Positions 28,193 to 58,614 are shown, counted from the stretch's first letter. The stretch is 64,000 bases of DNA from Setoptus koraiensis (GCA_048013815.1 CM106586.1:10974001-11038000); one strand, 5' to 3'. Made by a program: numbers and translations. The notes: a model not told the origin generated them from the letters alone.

Positions 28193-28530
28193 CAGCGGTC
28201 GCTGCGAACGCCGAACGTCCGACGGAACGTTCGCTGGAGCGGCTCGAGCCGCTCGAGTCGAGCCGTGGCCGCAACGCTCGCCTCGCTGCAGCGGCCACTC
28301 GAGTGTTCGCTCGCTGGCGGAGTGGCTCTCTCGAGCCACTCAGGCCAAATTGCGTCTCGGAGCGAGCTGCGACAGGCCTCAAGTGGCCGCTCGGTGTTGA
28401 ATGATACACTCGATTTGCCTCAATGGATTATGGCGATCAACATTGTAGCCATTGAGATGCTTGAGACGCGCTTGACATGTGCTTTAGGAATATCTAGCAA
28501 ATTGATTGCCAGATACCCCAAACTCACAGG

Positions 28531-28568
28531 CATGCAACAATTGCAAGTGTTGACCTACACATACATAG
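28531..28568 (+). pseudogene. MRPL42: 31-bp scrap of the MRPL42 coding sequence (encodes MQQLQVLTYT)
   Basis: 28531-28561 matches the reverse complement of 58261-58291 at 30/31 nt. ACATAG resumes after a 4-nt gap. Confidence 0.8.
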
Positions 28569-29242
28569 CTATGAAATACATTGGAGCTAACGACAGCCCA
28601 TCTTGTTCGAGCGACGATAAGAAACCGTTGGAATATGATTCCATCTATAGTGACCAGCTAACTTCAAAACATTATTCACGCGACAATGGTAAAAAATTTG
28701 AAGACAGCATGATCAGCATGGATAAAATTTCAAACAATCAAGACAGCGCAAAGACACCAAAAAATCCTGTAAATTTACATTGCGACCCATCGAGTTTTGA
28801 CCGAACGCCCCTTAGGGTTTTGAAGAATCATGATGACATGAGGGTTAGCTCCAAGATCTATTACCACCAATAACTATTTTCGTACATTTCTAGGTACATC
28901 GTGGCTAGAAACCATCAAATAATCAAGTCACATTGTATTTGGAACTGAATAAAGAGTTTATGAGGGACCATTGATCGTCTCATAATCAAGTTTGTCACTT
29001 TATCCGTTGTCGGGGGCAACTGTTGTAGAAAGTCTGTATTTCGTGTTTTTATTTGGCGCTGGAGCTCAGCTTAAAGCATGTTGGGTCTGCATTTTCTCGA
29101 CATAAACACGTTGATCGTTTCCAAATGCCGACTTCTTCATTCGACTGACACGTGCAATGAAATAAACTTATCCTTTTCTACCAAATTGTGCAAAAAAATA
29201 TTCAACATTCAGTGAAACCGACAATCTAGATTTACAGTCTCA

Positions 29243-30289
29243 ATGGTTCGAGTAACGATAGACAACAAGATTAGAACATTGACTGAAAATGCTATCAACA
29301 CCGGGCACAGAGGATTGCTTGTGATAGTTGGCGAGAGGTCTCGTGACCAGGTTGTTACATTATATCACATATTAACTAAGTAATGAACGGTTCATTTTGT
29401 CACTCATGGATTGTAAGACTAGTTGTATTATTGACGATAAATTCAACATATTACCAATTTGTTCACACATATTAGATTTGAAACTAGAACCCAAGCAAGA
29501 CTTCTCAGCAACAGAGCCGGAGTTACTGAAATTGCGTGAGTCCATTGCTAATAAACAACCGCTGGAATCTCTAGTTGCTCTGTGTAAGACAGTTGATCAA
29601 GCTAGTGCAGTCATCAAATTCACGGTTACGAGGGAACTGGACGATCTTTGTCTCTCAAACTTTTGAATCAACTTCGCCAAAATACAGCTACCTCCAACAG
29701 TAGTGATCAACTTATGAGTTCTCGCCTCTTGAACGAGCTAGTTCTCGAAGAACCTATCCGTTATCGTGCTAACGATCCGGTCGAAAAGTGGCTCAACAGT
29801 CTCTTATGTTTGGATGCAACAATTTGTGAATTGCCTTGGCATTCTGGTTGTCCCGTTCCAGATGATTGTCAACTGTACTATATTAATAGAGATACCCTCT
29901 TCAGTTATCATAAATCTTCAGAGGAATTTCTGCATCATCTCATGGCACTATACGTGGCATCTCACTATAAGAATACGCCGAATGATCTACAAATGATATT
30001 TGATGCACCAGCGCACCATCTATTTTGCTTGCTTGCGCCCAGCAAAAAAAAGACTCAGTTACCAGAAGTTTTGTGCTTTGTTCAAATTTTCCTCGAAGGT
30101 GAAATATCACGAGAGTCAATAATGAACTCTTTAGTGAGAGGTAAAAGACCTGCTGCTGGAGACCTTATACCTTGGACTATATCTAGACAATTCAATGATG
30201 ACAACTTCGCCTCTCTTTCCGGTGCCAGAGTTGTACGAATTGCAACTGATCCTAATTATCAAAAAATGGGTTACGGTTTGCGAGCCCTG
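29243..30289 (+). pseudogene. NAT10: RNA cytidine acetyltransferase NAT10 remnant with two large internal deletions and 3' truncation
   Basis: MVRVTIDNKIRTL..DQVVTLYHILTK* (29243-29383) is joined out of frame to NERFILSL..KTVDQASAVIKF (29382-29621), which is joined out of frame to GYEGTGRSLSLKL..HYKNTPNDLQM..RVVRIATDPNYQKMGYGLRAL (29624-30289). The helicase Walker A segment and the C-terminal part are absent. Confidence 0.92.
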
Positions 30290-30333
30290 ATACTATGGTA
30301 TAGATATAGTTTCATATTGTGTAAGGAACTCAC

Positions 30334-30468
30334 CTCGAACAGACGGTCCTGGGTGTACCAGACGTCGCCCTCGTCCACTTTGCCGTAGCCGCTGGAATAG
30401 AGGTCTTGGTACTGGTCGGTTTGCTCGTCGCTCACTGTTTGCGACAAAATCTGGCGTCGACTGATCAT
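30334..30468 (-). CDS. exp: first coding exon of an expansion/rebuf-family (Smad-like MH2) gene; downstream exons not found in the window
   Basis: MISRRQILSQ..DEGDVWYTQDRLFE resembles the family N-terminus as I recall it (MVSRRKILSRS..DEEDVWY.K.KL). It ends at a phase-0 donor GAG|GTGAGT (intron starts at 30333). Confidence 0.65.
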
Positions 30469-31307
30469 TGCGATTAATTAATTATTGATTGGTCACAATT
30501 TTTTCACGATTTGATTTTGATTCTGATTCAGTTTTTCTTGCTCACTTGCCGCTGTTTTCACTGGGCGCTGTCTTGGCAGTCTGTTCTTCTTATCGTCGAC
30601 AAGTAGGCAATTGTTTCAGTTCACTCGCTTGCTATTGTTGCTCGTGTTGTAAGTTTGTCGTCGTTTTTGTTGTCGTTGTTGTGGTCGTTTGTTTGTTTGC
30701 TGGTCACTGTATGTTGATGCAATAACACTGTGCACCCTGTTGATTGCACGAACACTTGCACTATTTGCGTCATTTGATCTGATTAAACATTTGTTATTTT
30801 GTTAATGTTGATTGACTATGTTGCTTGTTGTTGATTGTTGTTGATTGTTGTTGACTGTTGTTGACTGTTGTTGACTGTTGTTGACTGTTGTTGCATGGAC
30901 ACGAGAGAAGAGACGCGAAAAGAAACGAAACGAAAATGCCGGCTTGTAACAGGGCATGCAATGATGCGATGTTGACTCGTTGCCGACCAAACTAGTTGTA
31001 ACTCGCACAACTCGCAACACTCGACCAGTCGAATCTCGAAACGAAAGCGAGCTCGCCAACACACACTCACCTGTTCGAACACACACTCACCTTTTCGAAC
31101 ACACACTCACAACCTGTTCTAGCTTTTGCTTTTTTGCTCGATGGTCGATACTTTTACTATCAGCACACGGCTCCACCAACCAACTAGAGCCCTCCCACCA
31201 CCTACGATAGCCGGTCTGCCTGTATTGCCTGCCATCTAGTGCAGAGTTACGTAGAATTGAACGTCTCCGGTTCGACCGATGAAGAGAACAACGAACCCGA
31301 AATAACT

Positions 31308-31495
31308 ATGAGAATTGCCATGTGGGGCCAATGCCACCCAAAAAAATGTACCGGTCGCAAACTCGCCAGACATGGGCTCATCGAATCTCGACAGCGGCCA
31401 ATATGTTTCATGTGATGTGTATCAAATATAAACGACAATATCCATTCCATATTGTTGACACATTTGGAATGGGCCCATCAAATTTTTAACTCATC
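31308..31495 (+). pseudogene. TSR3: 18S rRNA aminocarboxypropyltransferase TSR3 remnant
   Basis: MRIAMW--GQCHPKKCTGRKLARHGLIE versus the family motif LAMWD(L/F)xxCDPKKC(T/S)GRKL: two codons are missing and D has become H. Out-of-frame scraps GQYVS and a degraded F.WG..FL follow. Confidence 0.8.
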
Positions 31496-31611
31496 CCCTG
31501 AGTGTTTATTTCAATTATTGCCCTAGCCTCGATACATCACAATACACATATTACGGCATTTTTAAATTATTCAACTTGTCACTCGTTATCATGGATTCAG
31601 TGAAGGGACGC

Positions 31612-31894
31612 GTTTTGCCACTAGACGCCTGAACAATATCAACACATTCAACATATAGTTCCCTGGAATTATGTCTCTTTTAGAGCTCTGACAAAACTGT
31701 GGCGTTTTATCTACTGGAGCAGTCAATTTTTAACACGGATTATACTGCCACTGATGCAATCATATTCTATGGCCGCCGATTTCACATCTTGGGACAAATT
31801 TAAATCGACGCTCAAGGCGAATCTCATCTATTACTCATCTTACGAAGCCATATTCTTAATATTGCTCGTATACATATATTATGTTGAGATATAG
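31612..31894 (+). pseudogene. LMBRD2: LMBR1-domain protein LMBRD2 fragment
   Basis: VLPLDA*TI (in-frame stop), then a frameshift to PWNYV..LWRFIYWSSQFLTRIILPLMQSY..KFKSTLKANLIYYSSY, matching the recalled LMBRD2 motif [22 protein letters not shown] (W has become R). Most of the protein is missing. Confidence 0.78.
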
Positions 31895-31963
31895 AGACCA
31901 TTACAATTATTACTATCATCACTATTATTTGAAAGAGACTGTTGATATTACAGCAAACTGACC

Positions 31964-34068
31964 ATGGCAAACACAGATGAGGTTAAAGAGTTGACCATCA
32001 ATGCCATACTGATAGATGTATTCAGATTTCTTGTAAGCCAAGAACAAACGACCATCCTATTGGATAAATTGCAATCGGCAAATATCCTTGCAATTTCAAA
32101 CGAATCCACTTCAAAACAACAACAGACCACCAATGATAGCCAAACCACCACCACCAATACCAAGTCTGCGGCTCGTGCCAGAACAAATCTAACAATAAGA
32201 TGTCTAGATTTGAGTAGGATATTTGAAGAGAAGAAGATAGACCTTTACAAAAATGTTACACTCAATAATATGAATCAAGTTTTATTCGACAGAATACTGA
32301 TAGAGGACTATTCATCATGCCAGCAATTAGTTTCATTAAATATTTCGCCCTCGGCTCTCAACACACCAAATCTAGATTCTGAGTCGGTGGCTAACTCGTT
32401 TAATCCGGCCGACAGTCAGATATTGCGCTATTTATATGGCTGCTATTACAGGCTGCAACAAATCAAAAGTCAACAAAAGTTCAGCTCCTTGAAGGACCAA
32501 CTGACCTCAGTTGAAAACCTCATCATTGATCAGGTTCTACTTTATCTGATTCAACCAGATGTTTTTCCCGATAGAGAAAAACGATATAAAAGTGACGAAC
32601 AAGGAGGCTCACCTCCACTATTATTGAATTTGGTTACTCATTATCTGAAAAGTGCAGCCGAGTTGCATTGTGATATTATACAAAGATTTGTTGATACTAT
32701 CGGAGAACGAGGTGGAGCCAACTATGATTCAGATAGTTTATTTACTATTATCAAACCAATTTGCACTAGATTGTCACAATTGTTTGTGAAAATATCAATT
32801 GATGATCCAAAGGTACCGGAGCTAGTACAAATACTGAGAGTATTCGTACAAGAACCCAATATGGCGGTGGCGTTTATACAATTCAATTCACTTAGAATTG
32901 ACAATTCTGTAGCATACCAGAACACTCTGATTGGCTATCTACTCAGCGTGTCTTCACTACCTAGAACTAGCCAATCTAATTGTACATTTTTTCAGAATCC
33001 ATCTAGATTAGCGCAAAGTGAGCACAATTTTACGGAGACTCAAATAGGGCTTAAATTACAAACTATAGGAGCCGAGGCCCACAAACTATTCCATATCTTA
33101 CTTAAGATGCCTCAATCGCGCGGCCTCTTCTTGGAATGGCTCGGCAAGTGTTTGTATACATTTAAGGATAGAAAAAAGTTGTGGAGCAATCAATTACTTA
33201 TGGCCACTAGCACAATATCAGTGAACGACGGGTTTCTCATGAATTTACTTACCGCAATGTTGCATCTATGTGAACCGTTCGTAGGACCGTACAAAAGGAC
33301 GCTGGAAAACGCAGCCAGGTTGGACAGGAAATTGCTCAAGATAGATCCAAGATATTGCAAAATATCTACAGTACCTAAGTCAAATCAAGTCAAAAAACCG
33401 GGTGAATCAGGAGCGGCAGCAATAGAACAGCAGTCAAAATCATCCAACAATACAGCCCACTTTTTAGGTTTATGCGAAGAGACATTCTTTGTTGATGCTT
33501 CAGATGAAATTGCATCTTTCGAGCCTCAAGCGAATTTTATCAGCGAACTCGTCGACCTATGTATCTTGTGCTGAAATACTTGTGGGGAAAGCAACAGCAC
33601 AGGGCCAAGTTGATTGAACTTGCCGACGAAGCGGAACGTAATATTGAATCAGCAAGGCCACTTTTGTTTTTGCGCTTTATAAATCTTTTGATGAATGATG
33701 CCATCTTTTTGTTAGATGAAGCTCTTGGTTATATGAGTACATTAAGAGAGACACAAATCCAAAGAGGAACGGTGGAGTGGACGCAAATGTCAGAGCAACA
33801 GCGCGCTCAAGCTGAGGCTAACGCCAATCATGTTGGTAGACTAGCTAGATTTCATAATGTCCTTGGACTTTCAACAATTAGTACATTGGCATGGTTGACT
33901 ACCGAAGTAAAAACTATTTTTTCACATGCCACCCTCGTGGATAGAGTGGCCAATATGTTGAACTACTTTTTGGTTCATTTAGTTGGGCCTAAAATGAAAA
34001 ATTTCAAGGTCAAAGATCAAAACGAGTACGAGTTTGAACCTAAAGAGCTAGTTGGACTCTCCAACTAG
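31964..34068 (+). pseudogene. UBE4A: ubiquitin conjugation factor E4 A with a frameshifting internal deletion and loss of the U-box
   Basis: ORF 31964-33574 (to ANFISE) is fused at ~33548 out of frame to RRPMYLVLKYLW..FLRFINLLMNDAIFLLDEAL..MLNYFLVHLVGPK..FEPKELV. About 240 aa between NFISE and RRPMY are absent relative to the human protein as recalled, and the C-terminal U-box is missing. Confidence 0.9.
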
Positions 34069-34673
34069 AGCTCGTCTATGTTTGCCGGTTCGCGATTCTG
34101 CTGTGCCATTTGAGCTTCTTCTTGTATACGTGGGTCCATTTTGACAAAGTTGGCATAGTAACTTTTGGTGAAATCGGTCATTATATCCTGAGTGCATTCT
34201 GGCAATTCGCCACTCATCAGGCCTGGCGACCCCGAAAATACTGAGAAGGTGGGTACAATTGTGCCTGGTGCCAATATTGTATTGTCCGCAATCGCGCAAC
34301 AATTTTTCAAAACCGAGTGGCGTCCAATAACGCAATTCTTTCCTATGTGAACATATGAGCCAACTATAGAGGCATTAATTACGCTATTTTCACCAATAAA
34401 TACATGATCGCCTATTTGCATACCGAAGAACGCTACCCCTTTAGCGTATCTCTTGAAAGGCGGCCTGATGATAGCTTTGCTGCTTATTACACAATGGCGT
34501 CCTATTTTGACATTTGCCAGATCTCCTCTTATAATACCGTCTGACTGGATGAGAGTCTTCCCGTTCAACATGATATTCTGACTGCCACACAAAACCGATT
34601 TCCTACATACTTTGTTTCCCGAGGCAGTCTCAATGTAATTGGACGGATTGTAATATACAACTGGTGGTTCCAT
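34065..34673 (-). CDS. DCTN5: dynactin subunit 5 (p25), intronless, 202 aa
   Basis: [62 protein letters not shown], with hexapeptide left-handed beta-helix repeats. Confidence 0.96.
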
Positions 34674-34697: not shown

Positions 34698-34736
34698 TTA
34701 TCGTAGTAGGATGGAGCTTTGAAAATTGTGGCCCAT
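34698..34736 (-). other. TAF3-derived upstream ORF (MGHNFQSSILLR*) in the DCTN5 leader
   Basis: Inverted copy of the TAF3 start codon and first ~9 codons; it stops 24 nt before the DCTN5 ATG. Confidence 0.6.
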
Positions 34737-34859
34737 TTATGTGTGGCAATCAATAAATACAATCAATCTTGAAAGATTGTTGGTAAATATAGCGATAATG
34801 TGTTCCTCCAAATGGAGATTTTCAACAACAACAACAATAAAGCACTGCGGAATACGTAC

Positions 34860-34993
34860 GCTAGCCTCCACAGTTCATTTTTCGTGCAGCTGATTTCGAC
34901 TTTCTGTGCAATTCTCACCGAAGACAACCGAAGATAAGGCGACACAATGTCGGCACAGTGAGCACACGAAAAATACAATGTGGAGGCGCTTAC
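34860..34993 (-). mobile_element. 134-bp MITE/introner-like insertion present in only one palindrome arm
   Basis: Imperfect TIRs GCCTCCACAnnnnATTTTTCGTG at both ends, with a possible TAC target duplication (34857-59 / 34991-93). On the minus strand it begins CAG|GTAAGC and ends ..CTAGC. Confidence 0.55.
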
Positions 34994-35218
34994 CTGAAAT
35001 ACGAAAATTTTTATTCGGAAAATTCATGGCGCATAGTTTGAAATAAGTTTCACTCCTAGTGATGGGAGGCAGCTCCCCGAGCTTCCTCCCTGCCCCCGGG
35101 CGAGACGAGGGAGCAAGTCGGGGAGCAGGATATTTCTTGCTGCCTCCCATCACTAGAAGTGAAACTTATTTCAAACTATGCGCCATAAATTGTTCGAATA
35201 AAAATTTTCGTATTTCAG

Positions 35219-35307
35219 GTACGTATTCCGCAGTGCGTTATTGTTGTTGTTGAAAATCTCCATTTGGAGAAACACATTATCGCTATATTTACCAACAATC
35301 TTCCAAG
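35219..35307 (+). other. putative 5'-UTR intron of TAF3
   Basis: CAG|GTACGT donor at 35219 and CTTCCAAG| acceptor 31 nt upstream of the ATG; inferred from consensus only. Confidence 0.45.
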
Positions 35308-35338
35308 ATTGATTGTATTTATTGATTGCCACACATAA

Positions 35339-37579
35339 ATGGGCCACAATTTTCAAAGCTCCATCCTCAGGGTGGTGGTGGGCCAAGTGTGTGAAGCTGT
35401 CGGATACAATTCGATCACACAACAAAGTCTAGAAATTCTAGTAGATCTCCTCAGAAATAGAATTATACTTTATGGAAGTTTGTCTGCCGAGCTATGCAAC
35501 CTCAACTCGCGTGTGGAGCCGACCATTTACGATGTACTCAGAGCATTCAAACTTTTGCGAGTTTCCATAGATGGCCTACAGGATCATATATCAAACGTGG
35601 AAATACCTCCAATTCCACTCAAGATTCGTCCAAATTATCCGGCCAAACCGGTGAATAGAATACAGCGTCACCTATTGATTGATGACCTTTTGGAGGCAAC
35701 GAAAAACAAAGCTAACGTTTCTGACTCTGCGGCTGTCGATTCCGAAGAGGCCGCTCAACAGAATTCAACTCCTTCTTCGACTCTTATGAAAGACATGTTC
35801 GCCGATGTACTGAACAGTTTCAAAGATGTTGCCCCTGTTTCGGCTGACAAGACAATCAGGCCCCCTAGTCCCAGATCTGTTAGTACAGTTATCAAGATCA
35901 AGAAAACAGCCTCACCTTTACCTGATGAAAACAAGGTTGATCATTTGCTACACCAATCGACAACCTCCAGACCTAAGACTCTAGCCGAAAGAAAAGCTCT
36001 GCCTTTAGATTTAGATACAAAGAGCTTCTTAAAAATATCGAGGCGACAGATAGGTGAGAAAAAACGAGGCAGAAAATCTCTCAAAGAGACCAAGGAAAGA
36101 GAGAAAGAAGATCTTCGGGCCCTAAAGAAGAAGATGGCATCTAAGACCGTGATGAAAGCAGTCAAATTGAGCAAGAAGGAAAAGAGTTCCAAAGATAAAT
36201 CGAAGAAGATCAAAAAATCTTCATTGAATCAATCTCCTGGACATTCCCCTCTGCCCACAGATAATCCCATCAAGATCCCAAAGAAGAGAGGTCGAAAGCC
36301 CAAGAAAGATAAACTACTCGCAGAAGAGTCTGTCACCCCCCAAAAGAAAGTTGGGCGAGTAAAATCCGGTAAAAAACTAAAACTGGATAAGAGGCGCAAG
36401 AAGACGGGAGATAAAATGAAAGTGAAACTCGACAAGGAGAAATCCAAGAGTGAGAATAATGTAAATGATGATGCAGTCATTGATCCTGAGCAAGGTATCC
36501 CGGCAGATGAAATGGTCGACGTTCCTCCCAAAAAGATTGAAAAGAAGAGAGGCAGAAAATCCAAGAAAGAGTTAGAAGCTCTGGCTTTGGCGGAGCAAAA
36601 GGCACTTCTGGCCAAGATTGATTCCGAGGATGATAAACGAAGGGAACTAGAAATGGAGCAAGAAAAAAGATTAGAGAAGGAGAGAGAGGAGATGGAGAGG
36701 ACCAAGAGAGAGGAAGAGAAGGAGCGAGAAAGAGAAGTGGAGAGAGAAAAGGAAAGAGAAAAGGAGAGGGAGAGAGAAAGGGAAAGAGAGAAAAAAATAT
36801 TGGAATGGGAAAGAGAACAGCAAGAGAAGGAAAAAGAAAGGCAAAAAGAAAAAGAGCGAGAAGCAGAAGAAGAGAGGCAAAGAGAGAAAGAAAGAGAAAA
36901 GACCAAGACGAAGGACAGGGTCAAGGAGAAGGTGGACACGGGATTCTCCGGCGAAGTCACGAAGAAAAAGAAGAAAGCCGGAAAAGCTGGTCGCAAGAAA
37001 AAGAACCAATGCATTATTATTACAGAAACTGTCGATACAGAGGATGCTCCGCGAACTGACGAGCAAGAGTGGTTTTGTCCTGCTTGTGGTAAGGCTGATG
37101 ACGGTTCACTCATGTTAGAGTGCGAAACATGTAAGAATTGGTATCATTTCAGCTGCACTGCGTTGACCAAACAGCCAGACGAGGAAGAAGACTGGTTTTG
37201 TGATCTTTGTCTTCAAGCTGCTTTGAAATCGAAGCAATCCAAAGCGAAAGAGGTGAAAGTTTCAAAAGATCGAAGGGATTCTAAAGAGAACAAAGAAAAA
37301 AGCCGCGATCCAAAACCATCTACTTCCAAGGTGCCCACTGAAGTCATTCCTGAGGCCGCTGATTCAGATGATGCCGCTTGTCCTGTGTGTAATAAAACCG
37401 ACGACGGTTCTCTCATGCTTCAATGCGAGGATCCCGACTGTGCAAAGTGGTTTCATGGAAGTTGTGTAAATATTTATGTAACACCAAGTGAAACAGAGCC
37501 ATGGTTTTGTAAGAAATGCGTGGAGAAACAACAATTATACCTTAATACGGCCTATGACAAACGCAAGCGAAGGAAATGA
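35339..37579 (+). CDS. TAF3: TFIID subunit 3 (histone-fold BTP domain, K/E-rich linker, two PHD fingers), intronless, 746 aa
   Basis: N-terminal VVVGQVCEAVGYNSITQQSLEILVDLL..VEPTIYDVLRAF; PHD motifs WFCPACGKADDGSLMLECETCKNWYHFSC and CPVCNKTDDGSLMLQCEDPDCAKWFHGSC. Confidence 0.93.
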   Translation: MGHNFQSSILRVVVGQVCEAVGYNSITQQSLEILVDLLRNRIILYGSLSAELCNLNSRVEPTIYDVLRAFKLLRVSIDGLQDHISNVEIPPIPLKIRPNYPAKPVNRIQRHLLIDDLLEATKNKANVSDSAAVDSEEAAQQNSTPSSTLMKDMFADVLNSFKDVAPVSADKTIRPPSPRSVSTVIKIKKTASPLPDENKVDHLLHQSTTSRPKTLAERKALPLDLDTKSFLKISRRQIGEKKRGRKSLKETKEREKEDLRALKKKMASKTVMKAVKLSKKEKSSKDKSKKIKKSSLNQSPGHSPLPTDNPIKIPKKRGRKPKKDKLLAEESVTPQKKVGRVKSGKKLKLDKRRKKTGDKMKVKLDKEKSKSENNVNDDAVIDPEQGIPADEMVDVPPKKIEKKRGRKSKKELEALALAEQKALLAKIDSEDDKRRELEMEQEKRLEKEREEMERTKREEEKEREREVEREKEREKEREREREREKKILEWEREQQEKEKERQKEKEREAEEERQREKEREKTKTKDRVKEKVDTGFSGEVTKKKKKAGKAGRKKKNQCIIITETVDTEDAPRTDEQEWFCPACGKADDGSLMLECETCKNWYHFSCTALTKQPDEEEDWFCDLCLQAALKSKQSKAKEVKVSKDRRDSKENKEKSRDPKPSTSKVPTEVIPEAADSDDAACPVCNKTDDGSLMLQCEDPDCAKWFHGSCVNIYVTPSETEPWFCKKCVEKQQLYLNTAYDKRKRRK

Positions 37580-38387: not shown

Positions 38388-38461
38388 AACACTTTTGAAT
38401 CACTTCGGGTTTATTAATTAGAAAAACACTTTTGAATCACTTCGGGTTTATTAATTAGAAA
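38388..38461. repeat. exact 37-bp tandem duplication filling the MRPS18C/RIOK2 convergent gap
   Basis: aacacttttgaatcacttcgggtttattaattagaaa x2. Confidence 0.95.
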
Positions 38462-58167: not shown

Positions 58168-58614
58168 TTACAGGCCCGGTCTATCTATAGTATCGTTTTC
58201 CATGTCTCTGAATTTCTTTCGCAAGTCCCTGCCCCTGTTTTGGTACCATCTATGTCTGGGTGTGTAGGTCAACACTTGCAATTGTTCCATGTTGGGCGCC
58301 TCAGTAACCATGTTGTAAGACCTATTAATAACCTCGGACTTGAGCAATGAGTCGTCACTCGCAACTGGACTAGGGAAAGGCAATGTGTTTTCATATGGAT
58401 GGTTCATCATATTGTCGGGATGATGGGCAATGAAGTAGGATTCATCCTGGCTGAGCCTGATGTGACGCTCCTTTCGGGCACTGATATCACCGGGGGCCAA
58501 GTGTCCATTATTACTGCTGCCGTAAACCCTGACCGAGTCGCTCTTGAATCGAACTGCAAATGTTGCTCTGAGATTTCTCCTTAATAAATTATATAGAATT
58601 TTGGCTGGCACCAT
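58168..58614 (-). CDS. MRPL42: mitochondrial ribosomal protein L42
   Basis: YFIAHHP..HPYENTLPFP..PNMEQLQVLTYTPRHRWY resembles the MRPL42 motif VCYHPSVDIPYEHTKP..PMIEQLSKMFFTTKHRWY. Confidence 0.88.
   Translation of the reverse strand: MVPAKILYNLLRRNLRATFAVRFKSDSVRVYGSSNNGHLAPGDISARKERHIRLSQDESYFIAHHPDNMMNHPYENTLPFPSPVASDDSLLKSEVINRSYNMVTEAPNMEQLQVLTYTPRHRWYQNRGRDLRKKFRDMENDTIDRPGL

Follow-up and report, generated by a model that had tools for sequence, protein, structure and literature searches.

Gene remnants in the belt

We analyzed a 64-kb window of Setoptus koraiensis DNA (GCA_048013815.1 CM106586.1:10974001-11038000), read on one strand and numbered throughout from its first letter, and studied within it a 5.7-kb belt (28400-34068) in which pieces of several housekeeping genes lie in a row with large blocks of their coding sequence missing. 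A preliminary description made from the sequence alone had recognized four adjacent genes there, NAT10, TSR3, LMBRD2 and UBE4A, each with large blocks lost, and partial Pfam profiles together with maps onto orthologues bear this out. The gene names also hold, that of UBE4A through a database name in the mite Aceria tosichella and that of NAT10 through matches in PDB and Pfam; TSR3 and LMBRD2 are named from Pfam matches and characteristic motifs. Beyond these four genes, the belt revealed a vanished SNAPC1, the tail of a small conserved gene, a minus-strand exon (30328-30468) and a short patch linked to MRPL42.

To describe the NAT10 remnant, we used intact intronless orthologues from two related mites (L007, 997 aa; L008, 979 aa) as the reference. 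NAT10 survives as three collinear plus-strand pieces in frames 2, 3 and 2, which cover amino acids (aa) 1-46, 183-265 and 412-641 of the ~980-aa orthologues. The first piece (29243-29380, frame 2) begins with the start codon, is 78-83% identical to L007 and L008 over aa 1-46, and runs into a TAA stop immediately after codon 46, at the junction. The second (29382-29623, with the alignment extending to 29630) covers aa 183-265 in frame 3, a one-base shift relative to the pieces on either side. The third (29624-30307, with the alignment starting at 29618) returns to frame 2 and covers aa 412/414-641, i.e., the end of the helicase domain and the first half of the GNAT domain; it shares 81% identity with L008 and corresponds to residues 423-651 of human NAT10 in PDB. 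The blocks lost amount to ~136 codons at 29381, ~146 codons at 29618-29624 and the last 338 codons at the 3' end. In terms of Pfam profiles, positions 2-42 of 178 (TmcA_N), 133-176 of 176 (helicase) and 2-128 of 229 (GNAT_acetyltr_2) are kept, helicase positions 1-132 of 176 are gone, and tRNA_bind_2 was not found by Pfam in the remnant.

UBE4A was mapped in the same way onto a 1,072-aa orthologue (P0001), with residue 1 anchored on P0160. Its N-terminal fragment (31964-33547, plus strand) has the native start codon and runs from aa 1 to ~487 (aa 51-487 in P0001), and its C-terminal fragment (33550-34053, plus strand) covers aa ~736-903 (739-904 of 1,072 in P0001) and is out of frame with the first. 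Thus, ~250 codons are lost at 33548-33549, and the last 168 codons, U-box included, are lost at the 3' end. Positions 2-165 and 410-567 of the 628 in the Ufd2P_core profile are kept, and Pfam gave no U-box match in the remnant. The preliminary description had put the missing blocks of the belt at roughly 100-250 codons; those mapped here are 136, 146 and 338 codons in NAT10 and 251 and 168 codons in UBE4A. Downstream of UBE4A, three relatives carry NAP, Torsin and an XK-related (XKR) gene, and the window shows no sign of any of them.

A homology search with UBE4A returned a tight group of ~30 full-length proteins, one of them named Aceria tosichella UBE4A, beyond which the closest named taxa were ticks and insects. 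The genes of this group are single intronless open reading frames (ORFs) on very compact contigs, and some adjoin a cuticle-protein gene. This company marks the host as an eriophyoid-type mite. In a tree, the UBE4A of the window is sister to all sampled eriophyoids, and by that placement the host is an early-branching member of the group.

Between NAT10 and UBE4A lie remnants of three further genes. The first, an unnamed gene that we call gene X (30296-30468, minus strand), retains exon 1 (30468-30328, 45 aa) and a GTGAGT donor, after which ~10-30 nt of intron abut antisense NAT10; the remaining gene is gone, and Pfam gave no match to gene X. Since the intron stub abuts antisense NAT10, one deletion would have taken both the 3' third of NAT10 and the body of gene X. 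Exon 1 was compared with a Logan contig of a close relative (L019, 929-1063; run SRR33593474), which has a GTAAGT donor and an ordinary intron at this position, without NAT10 sequence. All 45 amino acids are identical, with 16 synonymous differences. Fourteen of these 16 are G/C in the window and A/T in L019, a local rise in third-position GC content (GC) beside the GC-rich block that borders the belt. The spacer and promoter region between gene X and TSR3 (30469-31307) contains 10-bp and 20-bp tandem arrays, and a 44-bp patch within it (30970-31012) is conserved with the region upstream of gene X in L019. TSR3 (31308-31400, plus strand) follows with a start codon and ~31 codons that carry a Fer4-like N-terminal motif (PF04068, Fer4_RLI, positions 1-27 of 35). 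Its catalytic domain is gone; Pfam detected no further signal in other frames, and PDB held no match for the piece. The LMBRD2-type fragment (31646-31891, plus strand) consists of 82 codons that match positions 70-149 of 510 in the LMBR1 profile (E = 1.2e-21); the rest of that gene is gone, and only 70 bp separate the fragment from UBE4A.

Upstream of NAT10, a tblastn search to three relatives (L007, L008 and L011) identified what is left of a small conserved gene, its C-terminal part with the stop codon (28745-28873, plus strand). In these relatives the gene encodes 83 aa and stands in the layout GPCR (G-protein-coupled receptor) > small gene > SNAPC1 < NAT10; it has no Pfam match. The order of small gene and NAT10 is ancestral, as judged from this shared layout. 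In the window, the spacer between the two (28874-29242) measures 370 bp, compared to ~1,370-1,450 bp with a minus-strand SNAPC1 in the relatives, and is thus ~1 kb shorter; tblastn with SNAPC1 against the window found nothing. Two stretches of microsynteny are common to eriophyoid relatives from plant metagenomes and Logan assemblies (L001, L002-L006, L007, L008, L011), namely, GPCR-small gene-SNAPC1-NAT10-Rab and UBE4A-NAP-Torsin-XKR, and both can serve as anchors for finding intact copies in the host genome.

Near the left end of the belt, a 31-bp patch (28531-28561, plus strand) is the reverse complement of 58261-58291, with 30 of 31 bases identical. Its source lies 30 kb away, in inverted orientation, within an intact MRPL42 gene (MRP-S32 domain; 58168-58614, minus strand), and the flanks of the patch are unrelated to MRPL42. 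Judged from its sequence, the patch resembles a templated insertion left by repair at a junction. When the belt was compared with the rest of the window as DNA and as protein, no second copy of any belt gene was detected, and this patch was the only match. A near-repeat of 15 nt at the break in TSR3 (31393-31407 and 33945-33959) was discarded, being no more than chance would give by our estimate.

Junctions and age of the damage

By our tally, the belt contains at least eight junctions, each removing 0.4 to more than 1.6 kb, for a total of ~6 kb or more. They lie at 28874-29242, 29381, 29618-29624, 30296-30316, ~31400, 31892-31963, 33548 and 34054-34068. Three of them break the reading frame (NAT10 at 29381, NAT10 at 29618-29624 and UBE4A at 33548); the preliminary description had placed these at ~29381, ~29622 and ~33548, positions that are accurate to a few bases, and each of the three is indeed out of frame. 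It had also proposed to define breakpoints and microhomology by alignment. Such an alignment against the relatives' orthologues placed the junctions, which appear blunt or share 1-2 nt as far as sequences 45-80% identical allow. The junction letters are ACTAAG/T/AATGAACGG at 29381, an overlap of KFT/GYEG at 29618-29624 and GAA/CT/CGT at 33548, and none of these three resembles a splice site.

We considered whether the damage might be an artefact of assembly or sampling, i.e., a contig that is chimeric or collapsed, or a haplotype with these deletions that is rare in the pooled population. The affected genes are essential ones, and, according to PMC11920263, the published Setoptus koraiensis assembly was built from noisy continuous long reads of a pool of wild mites numbering more than 100,000 and was purged of haplotigs. 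However, the sequences concerned are unique rather than repeats, the flanking genes are perfect, and assemblers do not make eight base-clean internal deletions with collinearity kept; we therefore consider an artefact improbable.

We then assessed how long ago the genes were disabled. The preliminary description had noted few point stops; across the 1,205 retained codons there are in fact none, nor is there a single small frameshift. Under an equal-rates model, ~5.1% of single-base changes create a stop, such that ~1.8 stops are expected per 1% of neutral divergence. This absence of stops therefore limits neutral divergence since inactivation to ~1.6% or less (95% level). Synonymous sites of NAT10 and UBE4A are saturated against orthologues at 45-80% protein identity. 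Of 62 UBE4A columns that do not vary across mites, ticks, insects and molluscs, the retained pieces break 1 (0-6 in working orthologues), and of 141 columns invariant among eriophyoids they break 10 (33-46 in outgroups). The UBE4A remnant has a root-to-tip length of 2.88, and the three other eriophyoid tips listed have 3.16-3.36; its branch is not lengthened. In the third NAT10 piece, 4 of 80 invariant columns are altered, slightly more than in its nearest relatives. Together, the stop, invariant-column and branch-length results indicate that, until very recently, these sequences either were themselves normally constrained or had been copied from genes that were, and by the latter two tests we rejected long-term pseudogene drift.

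Origin of the belt

The pieces show homology to known families, carry disabling lesions, have kept their context and lack poly(A), as unprocessed pseudogenes do. That the belt consists of dead, unprocessed gene copies, the remnants of at least six housekeeping genes that were very recently inactivated, is in our view a sound reading of the sequence. Retrocopies were rejected, mis-spliced ones included, against which the preliminary description had argued from the junctions: several genes are present with promoters, spacers, start regions, a splice donor and a neighboring gene, their 3' ends are cut off and not polyadenylated, and the joins are not splice-like. We also discarded scrambled or germline-type pieces, trans-splicing and RNA repair, given that whole catalytic domains are missing, the pieces are simply collinear, and a TAA follows NAT10 codon 46.

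As to how the belt arose, we lean on balance toward a young, redundant, unprocessed copy that would have been eroded by large deletions. Fragments are collinear within each gene, the local order, spacers, start codons and splice donor are kept, and the retained parts match working orthologues in their degree of conservation. This collinearity, the shared strand, the native starts and the kept spacers favor a once-contiguous copy that lost pieces. Such a very young copy would have comprised at least two to three blocks (small gene-SNAPC1-NAT10, gene X-TSR3-LMBRD2 and UBE4A), would have stood at the edge of a gene island beside GC-rich repeat DNA, and would have been removed there by a series of large deletions, with the function presumably carried by intact copies elsewhere. 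The deletions may have formed by end joining after breaks, since the joins look blunt or share 1-2 nt and the MRPL42 templated patch lies in one junction zone. On this account, the compact genome would shed useless DNA mainly in large pieces, faster than point mutations accrue.

The preliminary description had proposed a duplicated segment, arising by segmental or whole-genome duplication. An origin as a duplicated segment with an intact duplicate elsewhere is plausible, because NAT10 and SNAPC1 are normally indispensable, UBE4A is found here without its NAP-Torsin-XKR neighbors, and duplicates occur in another eriophyoid genome; nothing in the window speaks for a whole-genome duplication. Since the neighbors differ in relatives even though the order of small gene and NAT10 is ancestral, the belt would be either a redundant copy with a lineage-specific order or several copied blocks side by side.

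If no duplicate existed, the sole copies of NAT10, SNAPC1, TSR3, LMBRD2 and UBE4A would have been lost in place by genome streamlining. The ancestral small gene-NAT10 order agrees with this being the original locus, and many conserved genes have been lost in eriophyoid genomes (PMC7738191 and PMC11879100). In-place loss is nonetheless very improbable, given that eukaryotes, where studied, cannot do without NAT10 and SNAPC1, that all sampled relatives keep an intact NAT10 and an intact UBE4A, and that a simultaneous, very recent loss of six neighbors without replacement is implausible.

Another possibility is that the fragments were captured as cargo by a transposon (Helitron, Pack-MULE or hAT type), which would suit the presence of several gene fragments, almost every one in the same orientation. 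However, neither the belt nor its blocks are bounded by terminal inverted repeats, target-site duplications or other transposon termini, and flanking inverted or direct repeats do not exceed chance; no transposase is present, and native spacers and gene order are kept. Capture thus appears exceedingly improbable.

The main rival to a copy eroded stepwise is a one-step mosaic, in which one round of error-prone repair or replication (copy-and-switch by microhomology-mediated break-induced replication, MMBIR, or fork stalling and template switching, FoSTeS) copied stretches of several intact genes, jumping ahead on each template and moving from locus to locus, so that the apparent deletions would never have been separate events. 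Such an event would account for fragments that are all equally fresh and free of small indels, for the 31-bp MRPL42 patch, which with its unrelated flanks is a textbook templated insertion, and for the juxtaposition of NAT10, TSR3/LMBRD2 and UBE4A blocks that are unlinked in relatives. However, random template switching should also give inversions and back-jumps, whereas all switches within NAT10 and UBE4A are forward and on the same strand, and the native start codons, the spacers, the neighbor in conserved order and the promoter patch are kept. A template-switch mosaic would combine segments of several templates in mixed order and orientation, joined at microhomologies; in the belt, one inverted 31-bp templated patch was found, the other pieces being collinear and same-strand, and microhomology would be measurable with parent sequences. 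We regard the mosaic as unlikely.

Several observations weigh against the stepwise erosion of a redundant copy, which we continue to prefer. In the sampled relatives, TSR3, LMBRD2 and UBE4A do not lie within 10 kb of NAT10, nor TSR3 and LMBRD2 within 10 kb of UBE4A, and the belt may have been stitched together from several loci. At least eight large deletions without one small indel or stop would be odd for independent, sequential events. Support for an intact parent is indirect. The junctions were placed through orthologues that are 45-80% identical, such that microhomology is defined only to a few bases. Finally, the four NAT10 changes at otherwise invariant sites suggest that some relaxation may predate the stop-codon bound.

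These points bear on the claim, made in the preliminary description, that deletion outpaces substitution. Large deletions do dominate the damage, but the claim about rates is not secure, since one complex event, or conversion by intact copies, would leave the same pattern. Gene conversion could also have kept the retained blocks young-looking. A bolder proposition is that eriophyoid-type mites have a repair or mutation regime that removes nonfunctional DNA almost only as large blunt chunks of hundreds to thousands of bp, and does so more than 10 times faster per substitution than Drosophila (a rough comparison). Taken jointly, these two statements are speculative and, in our judgment, doubtful. 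If true, the belt would be a direct record of the process that miniaturizes the smallest arthropod genomes, and the same process may also have excised introns.

Known systems and the surroundings of the belt

The belt belongs to a kind already known, young unprocessed pseudogenes decaying by deletion, of which it is a new example. Duplicated segments are fractionated by deletion, e.g., maize homeologs after tetraploidy. As in maize, redundant ordinary genes keep their context and lose pieces by deletion, with one of a pair eliminated. In contrast to maize, the belt comprises several genes in a row that have been hit many times by deletions of 0.4 to over 1.6 kb and show essentially no point decay, its joins look blunt and are not flanked by short direct repeats, and no evidence of a genome-wide duplication accompanies it. 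A deletion bias is likewise known from dead-on-arrival elements of Drosophila and from pseudogenes of Rickettsia and Mycobacterium leprae, where, as here, neutral DNA of a compact genome is lost through an excess of deletions. However, most deletions in those systems are small (1 to tens of bp) and build up alongside substitutions, whereas the belt has only large ones and not one small indel in 3.6 kb. Mosaics made by MMBIR or FoSTeS resemble the belt in the 31-bp patch taken from a gene 30 kb away and in the abutment of unlinked blocks, and differ from it in that the belt fragments are strictly collinear, on the same strand per gene and separated by native spacers.

Eriophyoid mites have the smallest arthropod genomes. 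Those of Aculops lycopersici (PMC7738191), a telomere-to-telomere mite genome (PMC11879100) and Floracarus perrepae (10.64898/2026.08.24.746826), share with the window its intronless genes and tiny spacers, and are arranged on two chromosomes. Streamlining and intron loss are reported in parts of these sources and of PMC11920263, and the telomere-to-telomere eriophyoid genome is described as having unexpectedly many genuine duplicates of conserved single-copy genes (PMC11879100). Whether genomic deletion or a reverse-transcriptase-mediated process drives shrinkage and intron loss is left open in the discussion of PMC7738191. A term search of PMC7738191 and PMC11879100 found, in the passages returned, no pseudogene-based deletion spectrum and no shredded housekeeping copies. 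Only young dead copies offer a neutral measure of a deletion spectrum, and compact genomes have few of them; since its 5.7 kb contain at least eight junctions that can be dated, the belt may serve as a yardstick for DNA loss in the smallest arthropod genomes. If intact parents exist, the DNA lost per substitution and the chemistry of the junctions could be read directly, and if there are none, the belt is simply a pseudogene cluster.

The belt lies at the border of two compartments. To its left, the window from 1 to 28400 is a 28-kb noncoding block with 53-63% GC and more than 60 short tandem arrays, and the ten longest ORFs of this block gave no Pfam match at or above the gathering cutoff. 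The block resembles the repeat-rich "backbone" between AT-rich gene islands. At the left edge of the belt (28200-28599, with the step at ~28400), GC drops from 68% to 42% within 200 bp, and to the right of 28400 it stays at ~40%, with long intronless ORFs of animal genes. Scans of the window with Rfam and for tRNAs found nothing.

At the right edge (34054-34068), the UBE4A remnant meets the 3' end of DCTN5 (34065-34673, minus strand), the first undamaged gene rightward, which matches PF21711 over its full length and is 76-81% identical to mite orthologues. Within the palindrome ctag (34065-34068), the plus-strand stop codon of the UBE4A remnant overlaps the minus-strand one of DCTN5, and any 3' untranslated region or poly(A) signal of DCTN5 would therefore lie within antisense UBE4A debris. 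In relatives, DCTN5 is followed by CKS or cyclin genes, not by UBE4A. Beyond DCTN5 come TAF3, RIOK2 and further intact genes. The divergent spacer between DCTN5 and TAF3 contains nested inverted repeats, an outer pair at 34708-34837 and 35238-35367 (130 nt, 98%) and an inner pair at 34991-35073 and 35139-35221 (83 nt, 95%). Further to the right, a 37-bp unit is perfectly duplicated in tandem (38388-38461) in the interval that separates a 134-aa ORF from the RIOK2 3' end.

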